DNA of 64,000 nucleotides, taken from positions 682,001 to 746,000 of the forward strand of contig QPMI01000416.1 of the NCBI GenBank assembly GCA_004431415.1, given 5' to 3'. Shown here one piece after another: positions 32,162-42,550 of the stretch; position 1 is the first letter of the stretch, and every line of letters starts with the position of its first letter. Under the pieces are notes generated by a model. It was not told the DNA's origin, made no database searches, and saw only the letters and a program-made list of their open reading frames with translations. The DNA comes from Cyanophora paradoxa CCMP329. Lineage: Eukaryota > Plantae > Glaucophyta. A program made the position numbers and the translations under genes.

Positions 32162-32417
32162 GAAGGCCTGCCAAGGCCGGGGCACAGCCGACAACCCCTC
32201 CGGATCCTTCATCGCCGATCGGGACAAGGCGCTGGATTACTGGCTTGAGCTTCTCAGATCCATCCTCAAAGAATGCTTCCCTCTCTTGCTCGAGTCCTTT
32301 TACCTTTGCTGGTGCCTGCAAACGCGCCCCAATTGCAACGAGCGCGAGCGCGTTCGCGATTGGCCGCTCGAGAATCTTATGCGCGTTTTCCGCCCCAGGC
32401 TTGCGGGCCGTACCCCC
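32162..32417 (+). repeat. Left copy of the 256-bp target-site duplication
   Basis: Matches 42295-42550 except for one T/C difference (tggcttgag vs tggctcgag). Followed directly by T8. Confidence 0.92.
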
Positions 32418-35400
32418 TTTTTTTTGCAAAAGTGGACGTCGCATTGATACACCACGGCACATGTATCAATGTTCTACGTGACGTGCCCTTCCGACCGGTC
32501 ATCTATCTAGCCGAGGGTGCTAGCTAGGTGCCGGCCATGGGTCGCTCAATATGGGAGGTTCGCCTGAGTGGGGGAGCCATGGTTTTCGGTGATAGCCGTA
32601 ACCAGACCCACGCGCCCACCCCTTGATCAACTCCTCCATCCCTCATGAGCCCTGGAAGTGAAATGTCTCGCAGTCCGCCGCCCTCCCTTGCCGCCGCTCC
32701 GCCACGCCTCCTCCTCCCCACTCCGCCTCCTCCCTCCTCCTCACCTGCGCCCCAGGACCCCGATTAATCGGTGTCCCGTTTTGTCGAGGTGAAGAAGGTG
32801 GTAGGAGGAAGATATGAGGAAGGAGAGGGAGTGGGCGGAGGCAGCAGCTTGGGGCGGGCAGCGGATGCGGGGCAAGGCAGGGAGAGGTGCCGGGACAGCA
32901 GTGTGGAGTGAGCGTGGGCATTGGCAGGCGGCGCAGAGAGCTGGGAGTGCGGAGACGAGGCGGGCCGCGAGGGGTCGGGAGGGGTCGACCGGGTGAGAGG
33001 GGGGGCCGAGGCCAGGGGGTGGCCGAAGCCATGGGGTTGGCCGAAGCCAGGGGGTGGCCGAAGCCGATGGGTGGCCGAAGCCAAAGGGGGGCCGAGGCCA
33101 TTGGGGGGGCCGAAGCCATAGGGGTGGCCGGAGCCAGCGGGGGTCTGGCACTTGAGGGCCGGTTGGGGCCGGGGGGAGACCGTAGGGGCTGAGGGGCAGC
33201 GTCTTGCGAGGTCCCGAGCGGGGGGGACAGCTGAAGCAAGGGGGGGGAGGGGGAGTTGGCTGCTTGCAGCGTCGTAAGTGGTTTGTACACTCCGGGTGCA
33301 AAGAGGGACGTGATTGTGGGTTGCCCCGTAGGTATCGGCACCGTTCGCGCTTTTTTGGTCATGCGCCTGGGAGTCTTGCGGCCGGTTGCCTTTCTTTTCG
33401 CCGTAGGTACGGGCGGGGCGGGTGTAGAGGCGGGAGGGGGAGGGGTCGCGGGGCGCGGGCATTTGGGTGCCGGGGCGGAGGGGGTATCGGCTGTCCGTTT
33501 ACGTGAGGCAGGCGACGGGCGTGTTCGTTTCGGGGGAGGGGCCAGGGGGGGCCCCGGAGCGGGGCGTTTGGAAGGTTGGGTAGTGTTCGTAGGACCCGCG
33601 GGCGAAGCGGGCAGGATGCCAGTGTCGGAGTTCTCGTGTGACTGTCGTGCTGGGGGTACCGCAGGTAGGGAGGCAGGGCAGGAGGTGATCTCAGGGCGGG
33701 CGGGGCATTTTCCCCGTCTGGCGTCGGAGTGGGCCTGGAGGGCAGATGCAGAGGCGAACCGAGTGCCGCAGGTGCAGGAGAAGTCAGACGTCCCGGCGGC
33801 GGGTCCTGCATCGGGCAGCTGGGGGGAGGGGGGGCCTGGGGTGAGGGGGCGACGGGGAGTCGTGCAATTGCTTGGCGGAAGTTTTCCAAGAGAATCCATG
33901 GTTGGCCTTCCGAGCCCAATTCGCAGCAGAAGTCGGTGATGGAGATGGTATCATGGAGGGAGGGGGCGGGGGAGGGCGGGGGAGGGGGGGACTGGGCGGC
34001 TGCACTAGAGGCGAGCGGGAGGGTTTGGAGTCTGCATGTTTGCGGTACCGACGTTTGGTTCTGTCATTGATGCCGTGTCGGAGCTCCCAGGCGTGGTTGC
34101 GGGCGCAGCGGTCTCTCCAGATCGCACGGAGGTGTTGGTCGAGGAGCAGCGCTAGGTCTTTTTGGATTGACATTGTGGTAGTTTTGTTGATGCCCAGAGC
34201 TGTGCAGAGGGCGGGCAATCCTGCCGGGGTACCGAGGCGCAGGAGGGCAGGGGCGGGGAAGGGGAGCATGTCAGCCAGGGCCGGGCTAAGCTTTGTCCAT
34301 AGGGTATCGGTGAGACCTGGGGGGCGGAAAAGGGCCGGATTTTCGGTGGGGGAGAGGAGGGCGGATTGGAGGGGAGAGGCGGGGTCAGGAGAAACGAGGG
34401 GAGAGGCGGGGTCAGGAGAAACGAGGCGGAGGAAGGGGAAGAGTTGAAAGATGGTATCGTCGTGTCCTAGTGGTTTGGGCGAGTGGCGGAGAACCCGGGT
34501 ACGGAGGAAGGTCACGAGTGCGTCCTGGAAAGCTTGGAGAAGGAGGCGAGCGGCGGGGCAAGTAAATATGTGGACGAAGTCTTCGGGGGGTGGTTGTGGG
34601 GTCGGGCGGTCTGGGGTCTGCGGCCGCCGGTGGGGAAGAGGGCGAGGGGAGCCCGGGGGGTGCATGTGGCAGGGGCGGGGAGGGGAGGGTGGGGAAGCAG
34701 CATCTTCGGGGATGGGGCAGGGGTGGGAGGGAGGTGACAGAAGGGGCAGTGGGCGGTGCCGTCGGGGAAGAGAGGGCCGTAGAGGTCGGGGTCGTGGAGA
34801 AGGCGGATGGTGAGGGAGGGAAGGCTTCCAAGCATGCATTGGAATCTGACTTTGCGGAGGTGGTCGCCTGTGGGGTGCGGCGGTCCGGTGGCTTGTCGGA
34901 CACTAGGGAGAGGGCTGGAGCAAGGGTAACATGGGGTTGCTGAGGACGGCCCCCGCGTTGCGAAGCTGGCGCCAGTCGAGGTATTGGGAGAGGGAGGCTT
35001 CGGCTAGGAAGTGAGAGCGGGGGTCCCCCTCGACGCGGTACGCATGGAGTCTGCCTCGGTAGGGCTCGGCCCCGGGGACTGGGCCGTGGGATAGTGGGGG
35101 CGGGAGGCCAACACGGATGAGGAAGCATTTGAAACTGTGGGGAATGAAAAGAAGGGCGGAGAGGGGGGCGTCGGGGGCTGTTTTAGCAAGCTTGTCAACG
35201 GCGTCATTGTGGCGGTTGTCAGGGGTGTAGGCTGGGTTCGGGATACGATTCTTAGCCGGGGTGCGGGCCGCCTCTTTCTGTGCGGCTGTTTTGGATGTGT
35301 TGGCGGACCGTGGTTGCGGCAGGGTGGCTTCACGGTGAGCGGCTTCAGTTAGGATGGACGCCGCTTCGAGTGGGGTAACGTGGGACGGCCGGAAGAGACG

Positions 35401-38400
35401 GCGCGCTGTGGCGGAGGCTTCGTTGCGAGCCAGGTCGGCGAGCTGAGAGGCGAGTTCTTGGGCGTAGCGGGCGCCGGGAGGGAGGGGGGTGGCGGGCCCT
35501 TCGGGGCGGGGCGGGGGAGACTCAAGCACAGTTGGGGAGCGCGGGAGGGCTGGATGGTTGGGGGAGGATGGTGGGGAGTCGAGGGTAGGGAGGGTGCCGC
35601 CGGTGGAGACTGGGGGGCGGCGCGGCGGATGGGTACGCCCGGGGAAGGTCGGCGGGGGCCGGAGGGCCGGGAGGGTTGGGCTGCAGCATAGGGGGTCAAG
35701 GGTGACGGACCCGTAGCAGAGGCTGAGGGCAATATATTCACGGTATCTGCGGAGCGCTGCAGCGTCGGCCTGAATGTAGGCTGGGGGGCGGGGCAGGTCC
35801 GACGGGGTAAGTGCTGAGGAGCGACTGAGTAGGTCAGCTGTGAGGAGGAGGAGTGGACCGCAGGCCGTGCTGTTTGGGGCTGGAGAACGGAGAGGGATGT
35901 CTCCGGGCGTAGATAGGTCCATCTGCAGAAGGGAGTGGGGGGGAGGGGAGATCCAGAGTCGCGCTGACTCCAAGTGGCCGCCAAGTCTTGTGCAAAGGAG
36001 ACAAGGTGGTCAGGGACGTCGAGGGAGCCATTGTAGAAGTAGAATGAGCGCGTCTGTGGAAATAGAGCAAGTAGGTGCCAGTGTCCCGGAGGTCTGCTGG
36101 AGGAAGGGGTCAGCGAGGGGGCTGGTCGGGTTTGTTGAATTGGGCAATAGGTGAGGATGGGGACGAGAACGAGGCGGGCATCGAGGAGTCGTCCGTGGGG
36201 GATGTATCGGTGTAGGGGGAGGAGGGCAGAACCCCGAGAGTCGAAGTGGGAGGCTGCGCTAGCAGGGTAGGAGCTGGACGATAGGAAGTGAGCAGGGTGG
36301 GGCGAGGCCAGGGCGGCTTCACGGGAAGAGAGCAGGTCAAAAAAGGCTTCCACGAGGGGGAGGCTGAGGGGGGCATTCGGACGGAGGTGTAAAAGGTCGC
36401 CTCGTCGAATGAGTGAGTAACAGTGAGGGTCGGCTCGGGGGGCGGGTGGGAGGGGGGGCTTCGACGCGAGGGTTTGCTCCGCGCAATAATCATTGTCTGC
36501 GAAGCGGAAGGCATTCCCCAGCCAGCTTTTCTCCGCCAGCGTCAGCGGGCGAGGGAGGGGGAATTCAGTCGGGTGGACGGGGGTTCGGCCTGGGGAGGCA
36601 AGCGCAGCTGGGTGGGCCGCGGGCGACGGAGGGCGTGGGATTGAGGAGTGGGCGTGGGAGGGGGTGGAGGGATGCGGGGAGGGGGAGGGGAGTTGGGGGA
36701 CCGGGGGGGTGTAAGGGGCGAGGGGGGAGGGGGGGGACGGAAGGGAGGGGGGGTGGGGTCTCGTTTGCGTCGGACCCGGCGGCGGGCTTTTGCTGCCGTG
36801 TGCTGGGAGGGGCGGGAGCTGGTGCATGGGGTCGTGCGCTGCCGTTTTGTTGTGAAAGCCGGGCCGTTGGCCTGGATTGTCCCCAGGAGGACCTCAGGGT
36901 CCCGGAGGAGGAGAGCGGCCGCCCAGCGTTCCCGGTAGATGGGGGCGTGGAAGGGGATGGGGCGGCCCCGTCCTTTGCCGTACAGGTGGACTTCCTCGCC
37001 GCGGCCAATGAACTCAGCGGCGGTCATGACGAAGAGAGCGTCTTCACCCGTGTGGACGTGTTTCCAAGCTTGCGTGGGGAAGGTGCTGGTGTCGTATTTC
37101 CAGGCCGAGCGTGGAGAGGGGTCGCCAGGGCGGAGGGTCGCCGTCCACCATTTGAGGACCCAGTCTTTAAGAAGGACCGTGACGTCGGAGGCGGGTTTGC
37201 GGGTGACGTCCAGGATGCGGATTTCGCGGAGGCGGGCTGAGATGATTGCTAGTCGCCAGGGTCGGGACCCAGAGGGTGGTAGGGGAAGGAGAATATAGTC
37301 GTACTCCGTTGGGAGAAGGGGTGCGGGACGTAGGATCGGTCCGTTAGCGGCCGGCCTGCGCGGGTCTTGAGCGAGAGGGTGGAGGGGGCTGTGCCCATGA
37401 GGATTGAGGTTGCGTGGAGGACGAAAGAAAGAGGCACTTGGGGGTGGTGGGGGCGTGCAGCCGGAAGGAGACTTGCCGGTTCTGAAGAAGTCTGAAGAAA
37501 GCGTCAATGGGTTCTGCAGGTATGGGTTGTTCGAGGAGAAGGGGTGTGGCCAGGTGGGCCCCAGACCGGGGTTGGGGTCGATGAGGGAGAGAGGAGCCGC
37601 TCTAAGGGCGGCCAGGCGAGATTTTATGCCATCAAGGAGGGGAAGTACTCGGCGATCATACCGGGGCCGTCAGGATCGATGGCAGCCGAGTAGGGAATGG
37701 CTCGGCGGCCATATCGTTCGAACAGTATGGGGAGGGCGCCGGTTTGGTCGCGGAGTGGGAAAGTGGGTGGGGGGCCGGGCGGGGCGGGGGTGGGGTGGCA
37801 GTGCGGGCAGGATAGGGCAGGTCCCCGTGCCCATTGTTCTGCGATCAGGGAGGAAATGGGGAGTCCCCACATGCCAGGATCACAGCGGTGGTACGCGATC
37901 GGAGGGGCACCAGCCTCAGCTTGGGAGGTGGGGGCAAGCGTGAGATCTTCGTCCCAATACCAGGCGGGGAGAGGCGTGTCGCGGTCGGCGGGGACAGCCG
38001 GTTTGCAGAGGGAAGTTTGATAGAAAGTCCAGCTGGGGCCGGGGGCCCGAGGGTGGGCTAAGTGGTGGTCGAGGGCGAGCTTCCTTGTAGGCCCGGGGTC
38101 GGGGTATTCGGCGTCGGGGGGGTCCTCGGGGAGTGGTTGAAGGAAGATTGGGTTGGGAGGGGAGTAACATTGGAAGGAGATGTTGCGAGTGATGTTTTTG
38201 CGTCCGAAGGCTTCTAGGAAGGCTGAGTAGGCGCGGAGGATGTCGCAGTCCGAAGTGATGGTGAGATGTTCGTCGGAGGGGAGGAGAGCGTGGTTTTTGG
38301 GGATGCGGATGCAGCGGTTCCAGATGAGAGTTTCCTCCGCTGCGAATGCCCGTTCGAGTCTGGCCGACGCGAGGGGACGAGGTCTAGGATCAGGTGGTGT

Positions 38401-41400
38401 TGGTAGTGTCAGAGGCGTCGACATATTCGGCTAGGTCCGCCTGGCAGCGGAGGAAGTTGTAGTCGGCCGGGCTATCTGCTAGAATATATGTGCGAAGATG
38501 CCGGCGAGGCGGAAAGAGGGACGAGAATAGCGACGGGGGGAGGGGCGGGGAGGAGTCGTCCGAAAAAAGGAGTCGGGCGTCGGGGATGTCCATTCCACCA
38601 ATATAATGATAAGGGGCCGAGGCAGGGAACGTCTGCGGGGCAGTAGGTGGGGGGGCAGCTGGTCCGCTGAGGGGGACGCGGGGTCGGCGGGGGGAGGAGG
38701 GGACCGGGCGTCGGGTCGCCTGTGGGGTTGTAGCCGTTGCGGTTGGCCGCGGAATGGTCTTTGGTTGGTGAGAGGGGACCCATTGGAGCGTGATTTGGAA
38801 GTTTGGGTCTTGAGCGATACGAATGGCGTATTGCGTGCGAGCGTTGAGGAGAAGGGCCCCGTCTTCTCGGCGGAGCAGGGTGCGGAAATTGATAGGGTGG
38901 GAGAAAGAGGAGGGGTCTCGGAAGGCGAAGGCTGTCAGGGCCCGGATAGTGTTTTGGCTGTCCGTGATAATTTTCCCACCCGTGGGCCCAAAGTACGTGA
39001 ATGCTGCGGAGATCGCGCCTGCTAGCTCTCCCAGGTTCACGTTGTGTTGGACACCGGGGAGGCGGTGGGCGAACTCGATGTGGTTAGGTAGGTCGGGATT
39101 ATTTCGAGGGGTGCAAGGCCGGCGTAGGTGGTTCGGACTGATGCGGAGCCCTGTTTTTGTGTGCTGGCGTCCGTGTATATTACCCGGGAGTAGGGTCGGG
39201 GGGGGGAGGTGGGGAGTTTAGGGCACGGAGCGTGGGGCAGAGCTCAGCGAAGAGGGCTCGGGAGGTGGCGAAGAGGAAGTCGAGCCCGGCCGAGGAATCA
39301 TAGAATTCGCGGTCGGCTTGTGAGGGAGGGGTCCTCGGGCGTGGGCGTCGCTCGAGGGCGACATTGGTGGCCTGGGCTTCCGCGCGGAAGGAGTCCCACC
39401 AGTCAGTTTCCCGGAGCCAGAGGTCGATGAAACCAATATGTGTGATTTCGCGGGGGAGGTTGGGAGGGGGGAGTTCGGGGTCATATTGGGCGGAGGGGGT
39501 TTCTGAGGAGGGGTCGAGGCGGGCTTTTTTAGCTGCTCTTGTGGGTTGAGCGCGGGTGGGCTGTTGTCCTCTGAAGCGGGAGCATGGGAAGGCGGGGGCG
39601 GAGTCGGGCAGCTGCCGGGAGCGGGTGGGAGCCGGCCTATTTAGGTTGGAGAGGCTCGGAGACCAGCCCTTCGATTCGCACGAGGAGCCCGCTGGAATTC
39701 GGCGAACGTGGGATGCGTACTCGACCCAGCGGCAGGCCGTTGTGGAGAGGCCCAGCTCGCGATGGAGCTGTTCGGAGCCGCAATATTTTGGGTGGGGGCA
39801 GAATTGGAATTCGAGTCTGCGTTCACGCCAGGCAGGGTCGAGTTCAAGAGCCGATAGGCCGGGGTCGCGTGTGGAAAGTCCATCGTATGGGGTGAGGCAG
39901 TAATGGACGAGTTCCACCCCATAATTATACTCTGAGTCTCGGGGGCAGTTAGGGTCCGCGTCGGGGTCCTCGGGAGCCAGTTCGTCCGGGTTTTCGTCCG
40001 GGAGAGGGGGTTTCCCGACGACGCGACCAACTAGGCCTTGGGACGTCCAGACAAAGTCACCAATTTTGAGTCCCGCAAGGACGGCGTCGGCTTGGAGAGA
40101 GCGACGGATGTCTGGGATAGAGGGCGGCGGGGGCATGGGGTATCGGGGGAGGAAGGGGGACTGGATGGAAGGGCGGGGAAGAGAGAGTTCTTCGCGGACC
40201 GCGTCCCACCAGGAGGGGGCACGTTTGTAGTATGCCGGGACACGACCGTGACTCCAGAGGAGGGACCAATCAGCTAGTGAGCCGTCGGAGGACGTAATGT
40301 CACGGATGGTGAGGAGGCCGCAGCGATAGAGGCGCTGGCCGGCTCGTTGGAGGGTGAGGGGCGTCAATTGTGATGATATAATGTATTCTCGTCGAAGGTG
40401 GGACCGTCGGGAGGGGAGGCCGTGCGTCCAGGAATCGCATGTTGTGAGGATGTGGTGGGAGGTGGAGGTCAGGTCTGCCGTGATGGCGAGCGTAATATTT
40501 TTCTGTAGTGTAAGGGGCCCCGAAGGAAGGTTCGGATATTCATGTGGGAGGAGAGGGAGCCCGTACCGGGCCTGGGTGTCGAGGACGCGTTGTCGGTATA
40601 TTTGGCCGTAGAGTGATGATGTGTGGGAGGCGAGTTCCTGGCGGAGGCGCTCGTCGACGCACTGCTGTTGGCGTTGGATGACTGCTATTGAGGGAAGGCG
40701 ATAGATGGAGGAGAATGCAGCCGTGGAGACGGACTGGGCCAGGTTGGCAGTGTGTTTGGCCGCGGTGAGCCAAACAGCGTCGAGGGACTGGCATTGGGAT
40801 GGCGTTAGGGTCATGATGCGGAGGGGGTATGACAGTTTAGGGAAGAGAACCCGGTGTAATATCACTTGGAATTCGTGAACGGTAATCTTTTTCGTGGCTA
40901 GGATCGAGATTGCAGATTGGAGCTGGGATTTGAGTAGGCGGACTTGGTGGGTCCAGGACAGGTTCGCAGTAAACTGGACGCCGAGGACGCGGAAGGGCGT
41001 TGTGGGGGAGAGGATGTGGCCAACCTCAGCTCTGGAATCGCCAACTCCGACATAGTATTTGCTCTTGACCGGCTCTTCGGATCGGGGGGGTTTCCAGTGA
41101 AAAATTTCCGTCTTTTTGGCGTTCAAGTTCATGCCATGGATATGTAGAAATTCGGACAGCCAGTCAAGCATATGTTGGAGGCCCTGAGCCGAGCTGGCAA
41201 GCATGGTGGTGTCGTCGGCGTATGCAAGCACAGAGACTTTGGGGCAGGGACCGGCGGGGAAGTAGAGGGGTTCGCCAGGGCATGGTGGGCGGGGGGAACG
41301 GGGGCGGGTCGGATCAGATCGGTGCGGCCCAAGCTGGTAGCCGAAATTGGACTGAGTCGCTCGTTCTTCAATGGCGGTGAGAGCGGCGTCGAAGAAAATG

Positions 41401-42294
41401 CGCCAGTGGAGGGGGCTTCGATGCCACCTTGGGGAGGCCACAGGGGACTTGAAAGTATTCAGTGCGGCCGTGGGGGGTAAGGATGCACGCCGTGCGGTGT
41501 TGAGCTGCTTTTTTGTGGAGGGCTATATATCGTTTCCCTTCAGGATGGAGGTGGAGTTGGATACGGTTAAGGCTGAGCTCTTGGCTATGCCAGGAGACAC
41601 TGTCGTAGGCGCTGGCGATATCCCCCAGGCCGCCAAAGATTGGCTTTTTGAACTGGTGCGCGTCCTCGAGGGAGGATCGGAGGGCGTAGAGGACAGGGTC
41701 GGTAGATTCGCGGCGACAGAAACCATAATTACGGCCGCGTAGAATGTTATGTGTATCAATGCGGTCTTCCATGCGGTGGGTCAGGAGGCCCGTGACCAGC
41801 TTCCAGGTGACTTCTTGAAGGGTGATGGGGCGGAGATCGGCGAGATCTGCTGAATTATCTCGTTTCGGGATAGCGTAGACTTGGCCGCGAAGTGCGTGGT
41901 CGGGCACGTGGCCGAGAAGAGTGGATTGAACTAGAGCTCGGATGGCGTCGCGCGAGGTGGTCCAGTGGGCCGCGGACTCGAAGCTGTTTATCTCGTCTGT
42001 AGAGTGTGAGGCGGCCAAGGTCTGGCGTTCCGTCTTGGAGAGGCGGAGGGGGGACCAGAGCATTTTAAGCATTCCGTTCGTGAGGCCGGAGGGACCGCCA
42101 GCGCCATTGGACAGGGACGAGATGAGGCGATCGAGTTCGGGGTCCTCTGGCATGGCCATTAGCCCGTCCCAGACGGCGGGGGCGAAGTGGGTAAGGGGTC
42201 GGTACTGGCGTTTCCAGAATCTGCCCAACCAGGCGCCGTTTTCAATGACTTCGAATTTCGTAGCTATGGCATCCAGGTTTGGGGCGGCCTTGCG
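32418..42294 (-). mobile_element. 5'-truncated non-LTR retrotransposon (9.9 kb): RT, split RNase H with two Ulp1/C48-like domains inside, CCHC knuckle, C-terminal Zn finger, A8 tail
   Basis: RT motifs AGGPSG, LRPITLQEVTWKL, DIASAYDSVSW, GLPQGGIEAPLHW (across 1-nt shifts), VLAYADD, FRVLGV. RNase H motifs IYTDAS, NLGELAG, ITDSQ, WVPSH and HNDAVDKLAK. Also CPFC...HIFTC, AIWRDRC and CTCG...ALQAH. Poly(A) tail at 32418-32425. Several frameshifts at C/G runs. Confidence 0.92.
33003..33135. repeat. 17-18 bp minisatellite (ggccgaagcca-ggggt), about 8 units, near the 3' end of the retrotransposon
   Basis: Repeating ggccgaagcca/ggccgaggcca cores are visible directly. Confidence 0.8.
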
Positions 42295-42550
42295 GAAGGC
42301 CTGCCAAGGCCGGGGCACAGCCGACAACCCCTCCGGATCCTTCATCGCCGATCGGGACAAGGCGCTGGATTACTGGCTCGAGCTTCTCAGATCCATCCTC
42401 AAAGAATGCTTCCCTCTCTTGCTCGAGTCCTTTTACCTTTGCTGGTGCCTGCAAACGCGCCCCAATTGCAACGAGCGCGAGCGCGTTCGCGATTGGCCGC
42501 TCGAGAATCTTATGCGCGTTTTCCGCCCCAGGCTTGCGGGCCGTACCCCC
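42295..42550 (+). repeat. Right copy of the 256-bp target-site duplication
   Basis: gaaggcctgccaagg...ccgtaccccc, matching 32162-32417. Confidence 0.92.

Follow-up and report, generated by a model that had tools for sequence, protein, structure and literature searches.

A LINE retrotransposon of Cyanophora paradoxa whose RNase H domain is probably split by a tandem protease-like module

Introduction

Can the RNase H domain of a retrotransposon be interrupted, between its last strand and its last helix, by a module of more than a thousand residues, and what may such a module be? This question is raised by an element found in Cyanophora paradoxa CCMP329 (contig QPMI01000416.1, assembly GCA_004431415.1), in a stretch of 64,000 nucleotides (positions 682,001 to 746,000 of the forward strand) that was analysed as a whole and is called the window hereafter; all coordinates are those of the window. 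The region at 32-42 kb, which shows a strong GC skew, is a single element on the minus strand and belongs to the long interspersed nuclear elements (LINEs). A preliminary description of the locus had proposed that the RNase H of this element is split by about 1,200 codons carrying two Ulp1/C48-like protease domains. The RNase H motifs and the HNDAVDKLAK helix that it named lie on the minus strand where it had placed them, and the motifs quoted for 36430-35750 and 37500-36900 are also present.

Interruption of the RNase H domain

The N-terminal part of the RNase H domain contains, in this order, the motifs IYTDAS (strand 1, with the Asp of YTDAS), NLGELAG (helix A, with the Glu of GELAG), ITDSQ (strand 4, with the Asp of TDSQ) and WVPSH (strand 5 and the His), the first of them in a frame that differs from that of NLGELAG (Table 1). 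The closing helix (helix E), HNDAVDKLAK, with the last catalytic Asp, is located 1,188 codons after WVPSH, and not 5-15 residues after it as in a contiguous domain. The five catalytic residues (Asp, Glu, Asp, His and Asp) are all kept in canonical order across the insert. The frame-corrected core matched the Pfam profile RNase_H (E=0.0039, 17.8 bits) from position 31 to 123 of 141, and this match ended at WVPSH. The strict helix motif N[DE]x[AVIL]Dx[LMI]A[KRQ] occurs a single time when the 64-kb window is translated in all six frames, and in none of 300 shuffles of the element.

A search with the core of the reverse transcriptase (RT) revealed two LINE open reading frames (ORFs) of C. paradoxa with 30-32% identity (P0003 cluster). 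The protein P0008 (EukProt EP00741, tig00000037_g10112.t1; 2,104 residues), which is in the 90% cluster of those ORFs, includes an apurinic/apyrimidinic endonuclease (APE) domain (Exo_endo_phos, residues 1-196), an RT (RVT_1, 704-952) and an RNase H (RNase_H, 1611-1740). In BLASTP the element aligned to P0008 only from residue 602 on; it is thus 5'-truncated and lacks the first 580 or so residues, the APE domain among them. The RNase_H match of P0008 is contiguous (profile 28-140 within 130 residues), and between the His that ends strand 5 (...LTLVKVKAH) and the HND of its helix HNDVADALAN there are 8 residues. The RNase H core, the helix with its downstream sequence and two further blocks of the element aligned separately to P0008 (Table 1); the segment ITLQWVPSH was matched by eye to LTLVKVKAH, and the motifs YTDAS, GELAG, TDSQ, VPSH and AVDKLA pair with WTDGS, AELQA, IDNQ, KAH and VADALA of P0008. 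Since these blocks are collinear and in the same orientation, and only the stretch of 1,188 codons is extra, the RNase H of the element is split by an insertion relative to P0008-type elements. The interruption between the last strand and the last helix is, on this comparison, very probable, and the collinear P0008, with its equivalent strand and helix 8 residues apart, bears out what the preliminary description had proposed.

The RNase H motifs and the HND-x-x-D-x-LA helix are common to both proteins, as are the RVEGDP block, the CCHC knuckle and a W-x-DRCA-x-N-x-AWE block; the RT is 31-40% identical, and the two are collinear from the RT to the C-terminal region. In contrast to the element, P0008 has a contiguous RNase H and no protease-like module, whereas the C-terminal extension of the element is longer, with a C2H2 finger and basic runs.

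Other locations of the closing helix have been considered. The preliminary description had named an ADxLA-like helix directly after WVPSH in another frame as a result that would speak against a split domain, and no D-x-[LMIV]-A motif was found within 470 nt after WVPSH in any frame. The sequence QADLAEY (about 38440) was rejected as the missing helix, as it lacks the N-x-x-A-D-x-L-A spacing and has no counterpart in P0008. An intron was rejected as well: a plausible GT donor is lacking immediately behind WVPSH, and none of the contig joints listed, those of a run guessed to be RNA included, skips from 38767 to 35212.

Searches for more distant relatives were negative. A homologue search with the RNase H core found none, and the one carried out with the whole 780-residue RT piece also found none, its candidate list being filled by low-complexity words. 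Comparison by phmmer of the RNase H core, the RT piece and the RNase H of P0008 with the PDB gave nothing meaningful, metagenome scans with domain 1 of the insert and with the RT core recovered no relatives, and at E<=10 the frame-corrected helix piece had no Pfam match, the RNase H core being the only one of the pieces that matched.

Reading frame of the element

The element is not a single ORF as assembled: about ten frame changes occur between 39200 and 34900, each of them a +1 phase step, which means that one base is missing at each break. Short-read contigs of three independent DNA runs have been compared with 34900-39300, the indel support being taken from the 12 indel rows listed out of 16. 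An extra base, mostly a G in G-runs, was present in the contigs at 39101, 38395, 38372, 37662, 37567/8, 37415, 37310, 35877 and 34932/6, and in part of the contigs at 39185, which is the tenth supported break. Several contigs with the extra base are otherwise identical to the window, so the breaks have arisen by deletion in the assembly or in this copy and are not features of the family. The missing bases in G/C runs are probably homopolymer errors of the long-read assembly.

In the joined translations an X was placed at every break and no real letters were filled in; with these, the path from the RNase H core past HNDAVDKLAK is stop-free. The frameshift repair suggested in the preliminary description was supported by short-read contigs at ten breaks, and the continuous reading that it assumed exists once the breaks are corrected, whereas the window as written holds no single ORF. 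False frameshifts are to be expected in ORF-based readings of this genome, for which read support is needed.

The insert belongs to the element and is protein-coding

The insert is encoded on the same strand as the element, in phase with it, and has neither its own termini nor its own target duplication. Both junctions (38767 and 35212) are bridged by contigs of independent runs, with about 99% and about 91% identity to the window. The junction-spanning contigs of about 91% identity, which represent a second subfamily, include for instance 38433-38842, 38626-38867, 35119-35443 and 35164-35552; because they span the junctions, the insert is older than the split of the two subfamilies. Among the contig joints listed none skips the insert, and the summed contig depth over it is in the same range as that of the flanks. 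In the run X16, which is RNA by guess, the RNase H core, both domains of the insert and the region of the helix were matched by contigs of about 91% identity, mostly without gaps. The module is therefore also carried by a second subfamily, for which transcription is possible as far as the guess about this run holds.

The differences between copies have been placed on the corrected frames (39 listed of about 240). Third codon positions hold 31 of the 39 (binomial p=4e-9) and 29 of the 39 are synonymous; within the insert, 24 of the 33 listed differences are synonymous (p=5e-7 against 30%). This bias towards third positions and synonymous changes indicates that the insert is protein-coding and under purifying selection.

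The preliminary description had also considered that the insert could be an element in its own right, nested within the RNase H of a single copy, to which the possibility of an assembly chimera can be added. Its size of 3.6 kb and its position inside a domain would suit such an origin, and so would a cluster of short contig joints at 37768-37801. However, the insert is on the same strand and in frame, lacks own termini and a target duplication, shows junctions that are spanned by independent runs and by the subfamily of about 91% identity, has a depth like that of the flanks, and accumulates its substitutions at third positions in the frame of the host element. The clustered joints, moreover, have only 21-22 nt per side in a G-rich stretch. 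We regard both a recently nested element and a chimera of the assembly as very unlikely, with a minimal probability. Loose ends accompany the joints at 37768-37801, and the whole cluster probably reflects low-complexity sequence common to many repeats and not a rearrangement.

Tandem protease-like domains in the insert

After WVPSH the insert consists, in order, of a Pro-rich tether, a segment called U1, domain 2, a basic Pro-rich linker, domain 1 and a tether of about 160 residues that leads to the helix. A local alignment of domains 1 and 2 gave a score of 68, compared with 37.6 +/- 5.7 for shuffled sequences (z=5.4, with none of 300 shuffles reaching it), and was collinear over about 160 residues. 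At the level of sequence this alignment confirmed that the two domains are paralogues, and the tandem arrangement given in the preliminary description is upheld.

The order of residues His, acid, Gln and Cys in their local context, with an acid that is usually Asp, characterizes the C48 (Ulp1/SENP) proteases. In domain 1 the candidate catalytic residues are a His (36083-36081), an Asn (36032-36030), a Gln (35882-35880) and a Cys (35862-35860), which are found in the motif order GHW ... YNGS (one hairpin later) ... LQ-x-PNSTACG. In the eight codons around this Cys three differences between copies were observed, all of them synonymous. The comparison of domain 1 with the ESM Atlas by features (best value 0.95, 185 shared features) showed that 26 of its 30 neighbours are Peptidase_C48 clusters. 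On the basis of this motif order and of these neighbours, domain 1 is likely a C48-like protease of clan CE. Domain 2 reads RPW (37264-37256) where domain 1 has GHW, which puts a Pro in the place of the His, and its GEDA position (37048-37037) lacks a Cys, so it should be catalytically dead; the Asp in LDV (37213-37205), aligned with the Asn of domain 1, is kept.

The first third of the insert, U1, had no match in Pfam, NCBIfam or PHROGs and no usable match in the ESM Atlas. Its start, YHYIGGMDIPD... (38599-38420; about 60 residues), is weakly similar to the C-terminal half of domain 1, YFYNGSLDVPD... (z=2.9, 2 of 300 shuffles), and may be what is left of a third C48-like repeat.

Proposed explanation and alternatives

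In type 1 RNase H, strand 5 and helix E are joined by a loop that lies at the surface. The explanation that is put forward for the locus is that, in this family, the loop received a module of about 1,180 residues, between the WVPSH strand with the loop His and the NDAVDKLAK helix with the last catalytic Asp. The module would loop out and the helix would pack back on the core, so that the RNase H stays folded and active. Since the five catalytic residues are kept and long flexible tethers are present, the module would most likely loop out of a still-active RNase H. Domain 1 would be a cysteine protease or isopeptidase of clan CE, carried along with the retrotransposition machinery, with the possible tasks of removing SUMO- or ubiquitin-like marks from proteins of the element or of the host, or of processing the polyprotein. 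The explanation as a whole (a LINE with a split RNase H, a C48-like module that loops out and a role for the protease) is held with moderate confidence; the part in which the module loops out and both enzymes are active is tentative, and we place it a little short of an even chance.

In the RuvC domain of Cas9, an RNase H fold is interrupted by the REC lobe and the HNH domain, and the active site is formed by segments distant in sequence. The likeness with the element is a functional analogy only, namely a whole extra enzyme domain placed between the last segments; sequence and biology are unrelated, and the domain inserted in Cas9 is a nuclease and not a protease.

Several results weigh against the proposed explanation. 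Two of the breaks, in the C-run near 39200 and in the Pro-rich linker 36893-36545, were set by frame logic alone, and the differences between copies that are listed are a small share of the total. The RNase_H score of the core is below the cut-off of 25.8 bits, as are those of P0008 (18.3) and P0005 (19.9). The triad acid of domain 1 is Asn, where C48 proteases usually have Asp. At E<=10 no Pfam match to the domain 1 and domain 2 pieces was obtained, PF02902 included, in a search whose sensitivity is lowered by the 35877 break, and at the same threshold NCBIfam and PHROGs gave no match to the protease-like domains. The phmmer search with the domain 1 core against 1.84 billion representatives returned one low-complexity match only, and that of domain 1 against the PDB nothing meaningful. 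The AlphaFold2 models of the RNase H of P0008 (4-row alignment) and of domain 1 (single sequence) were unusable, with predicted local distance difference test (pLDDT) values of 36.0 and 33.9; the secondary structure in the latter fits the C48 order and carries no weight. Finally, the activity of the two enzymes and the docking of the helix on the core are predictions. A prediction with three chains (RNase H core, strand 1 and helix piece) had a score of 0.11, which gives no verdict and weighs neither way. The C48/Ulp1 label of the preliminary description is consequently moderately supported, by the catalytic order, the motifs and the ESM Atlas neighbours and not by Pfam, NCBIfam, PHROGs or phmmer; in the profile search of each segment that it had suggested, RNase_H was recovered on the core below its cut-off, and Peptidase_C48 on neither domain 1 nor domain 2.

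Many LINE clades have no RNase H, and many LINEs depend on that of the host. The RNase H of this element could therefore be a relic destroyed by the insertion, with the host enzyme used in its place, the helix retained together with the sequence that follows it and the module as the sole novelty under selection. The helix is in fact contiguous with a conserved downstream block (RVEGDP..., AGAVL) common to P0008, and the sub-threshold RNase_H score also agrees with a relic. Against it, all five catalytic positions are kept on both sides of the insert, and 5 of the 6 differences listed in the core (38888-38919) are synonymous. A relic is considered unlikely.

Clan CE proteases (Ulp1, adenain and the proteases of African swine fever virus and poxviruses) cut after Gly-Gly. 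The insert contains Gly-Gly only twice, in YHYIGG|M at 38599 and in VSTGG|T at 35601, one pair near each end and both outside domains 1 and 2, and the protease could be imagined to excise the module at these sites, leaving an RNase H of two chains or one switched by cleavage. However, with 3.6% Gly chance would give about 1.5 such pairs; the first site, which shows a weak alignment with the YFYNGS strand of domain 1, may be left over from a domain; and neither site is preceded by a ubiquitin-like fold. The probability of such an excision is small. An RNase H that acts as a protease-gated enzyme in two pieces, switched on or off only after maturation of the polyprotein or by a SUMO- or ubiquitin-like signal in a zymogen-like control, has likewise a slim chance of being correct.

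If the looped-out module of the proposed explanation leaves an active RNase H, the element would be a natural example of tolerance to insertion in the strand-5/helix-E loop, of interest for protein engineering and for split nucleases with the RNase H fold. The significance of the locus lies in a whole multi-domain module placed inside a catalytic domain, with selection keeping both the halves of the domain and the module.

Comparison with known systems

LINEs usually gain their accessory domains at the termini of the polyprotein or in between other domains. The element is a LINE with an accessory cysteine protease, which is a known kind, and the position of the insertion is unusual. NeSL-1 and Utopia-1_TSP are also non-LTR elements with an accessory Ulp1-like cysteine protease, which in them is N-terminal (PMC4640811, where LINE clades are listed). 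They differ from the element in that the protease precedes the RT, a restriction-like endonuclease is present, insertion is target-specific and no RNase H is interrupted. C48 domains have also been recruited by DNA transposons, such as Ginger (PMC2836005) and the Mutator-like elements (MULEs), in these cases as a separate ORF or a terminal fusion and not as an insertion in a loop. In the full-text literature, as far as its incomplete coverage reaches, no report of a protease module inside the RNase H of a LINE was found. Should the C48-like domain turn out to be an active protease of the SUMO or ubiquitin-like type, it would represent a further independent position of recruitment besides the N-terminus of NeSL and Utopia, and would strengthen the idea, if true, that interference with SUMO-type marks is a recurrent strategy of retrotransposons.

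The Dualen/RandI elements of Chlamydomonas resemble the element in having an RNase H, an accessory cysteine protease and very long target duplications, which in the Dualen insertions are similar to or above 256 bp (PMC9977147), the length found here. They bear an APE domain; the APE region of the element falls outside its truncated copy, and its relatives bear one. In contrast to the element, Dualen has a protease described as Josephin-like (PMC8557442, citing Kojima and Fujiwara 2005), a C-terminal restriction-like endonuclease, and (ATT)n or (CTTT)n tails (PMC3747384). Downstream of the CCHC knuckle no PD-(D/E)xK motif and no Pfam match to such a nuclease was seen, in a 3' third that has uncorrected frame breaks. 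A classification as Dualen is not supported, given the poly(A) tail, a protease of C48-like appearance and the negative result for a restriction-like endonuclease.

This likeness bears on the identity of the domains, which could be not C48 but Josephin-like, with the order Cys...His...Asn (DYCAEQ ... GHW ... YNGS), or non-enzymatic. The Josephin-like protease and the long target duplications of Dualen would be in agreement with it, as would the Cys of DYCAEQ about 134 residues before GHW, and the lack of a C48 hidden Markov model match speaks for domains other than C48. Nevertheless, Peptidase_C48 prevails among the ESM Atlas neighbours and Josephin is in none of those shown, and no Josephin match was found in Pfam with the window proteins or the domain pieces. 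In addition, the sequence Gln-x-Pro-Asn-x-x-x-Cys-Gly after the His and Asn strands, with synonymous changes only, fits the C48 signature, no restriction-like endonuclease was seen downstream, and the poly(A) tail differs from those listed for RandI/Dualen. Domains that are Josephin-like or without enzymatic function are considered rather improbable, and the C48-like assignment of domain 1 is preferred.

Borders and other features of the element

The coordinates of the features are collected in Table 1.

Table 1. Features of the LINE copy and of its target site in the window. Motifs are given in the direction of the minus strand; two dots join the limits of features and a hyphen those of motifs and aligned blocks.
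Feature	Position	Strand	Basis
Target-site duplication, left copy, 256 bp	32162..32417	.	One mismatch to right copy
Non-LTR (LINE) retrotransposon copy, 5'-truncated, 9,877 bp	32418..42294	-	256-bp direct repeat borders, A8 end, collinearity with P0008
A8 tail, 3' end of the element	32418..32425	-	Plus strand: TTTTTTTT directly after the duplicated target
C2H2 zinc finger, C-terminal extension	33729..33782	-	Pfam C2H2_ASCIZ_4th, E=4.5e-4, below cut-off
Block equivalent to P0008 2035-2066	34146-34051	-	BLASTP E=3e-4
CCHC-type zinc knuckle (CPFC ... HIFTC), broken by a Pro-rich stretch and a frame break	34558..34748	-	Read from the sequence
Block equivalent to P0008 1809-1877	34955-34737	-	BLASTP E=1.8e-4
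HNDAVDKLAK...RVEGDP...AGAVL, equivalent to P0008 1728-1807	35211-34942	-	BLASTP E=2e-4; starts inside the RNase_H match of P0008
RNase H closing helix (helix E), last catalytic Asp, HNDAVDKLAK	35182..35211	-	BLASTP to P0008; motif unique in the window
Insert in the strand-5/helix-E loop, 3,556 nt + 8 missing bases = 1,188 codons	35212..38767	-	Absent from collinear P0008
C48/Ulp1-like domain 1, frame break at 35877	35692..36545	-	Motif order; ESM Atlas neighbours
C48-like domain 2, paralogue without His and Cys	36872..37544	-	Local alignment to domain 1
U1, first third of the insert, about 300 residues	37663..38599	-	No match in libraries
Pro-rich linker, about 55 residues	38767-38600	-	Precedes U1
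RNase H N-terminal part: strand 1, helix A, strand 4, strand 5 and His	38768..39189	-	Pfam RNase_H, BLASTP, motifs
WVPSH	38782-38768	-	Motif
ITDSQ	38968-38954	-	Motif
RNase H core, equivalent to P0008 1628-1675	39073-38921	-	BLASTP E=8e-4; inside the RNase_H match of P0008
NLGELAG	39037-39017	-	Motif
IYTDAS	39183-39166	-	Motif
Reverse transcriptase, two internal frame breaks	40971..41871	-	Pfam RVT_1 in two pieces
Target-site duplication, right copy	42295..42550	.	Pairs with 32162..32417

The element is a retrotransposon without long terminal repeats (non-LTR), as it has an RVT_1 domain, a tail and a target-site duplication, and no terminal repeats of its own were found at 32418-42294. The two RVT_1 pieces cover the profile positions 1-99 (E=0.0023) and 126-205 (E=3.5e-9), and the RT pieces aligned to P0008 in BLASTP with 40% (E=6e-51) and 31% (E=3e-56) identity. 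The sole mismatch between the two copies of the duplication is a T at 32246 and a C at 42379, and the identity of the copies stops precisely at the two borders of the element, its A8 tail and its 5' end. The best explanation of the copy is a young, 5'-truncated LINE of the APE type, whose relatives have the order APE-RT-RNase H-CCHC; the APE domain is outside its extent, and Exo_endo_phos is found in the relatives P0003, P0008 and P0009. A target duplication of 256 bp is exceptionally long for a LINE.

CCHC-type zinc knuckles, such as the one that follows the RNase H here, are typical of the C-terminal regions of LINEs. Near the end of the C-terminal extension the sequence QPTITSLF (33300-33323, minus strand) reads as a PCNA-interaction-like motif, and it is preceded by Lys/Arg-rich runs that resemble nuclear localisation signals. 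The 3' part of the element also contains, at 32961-33141, seven tandem copies of a unit of 17-18 bp rich in GGCCGAAGCC, which are translated into a short peptide repeat in the minus-strand frames.

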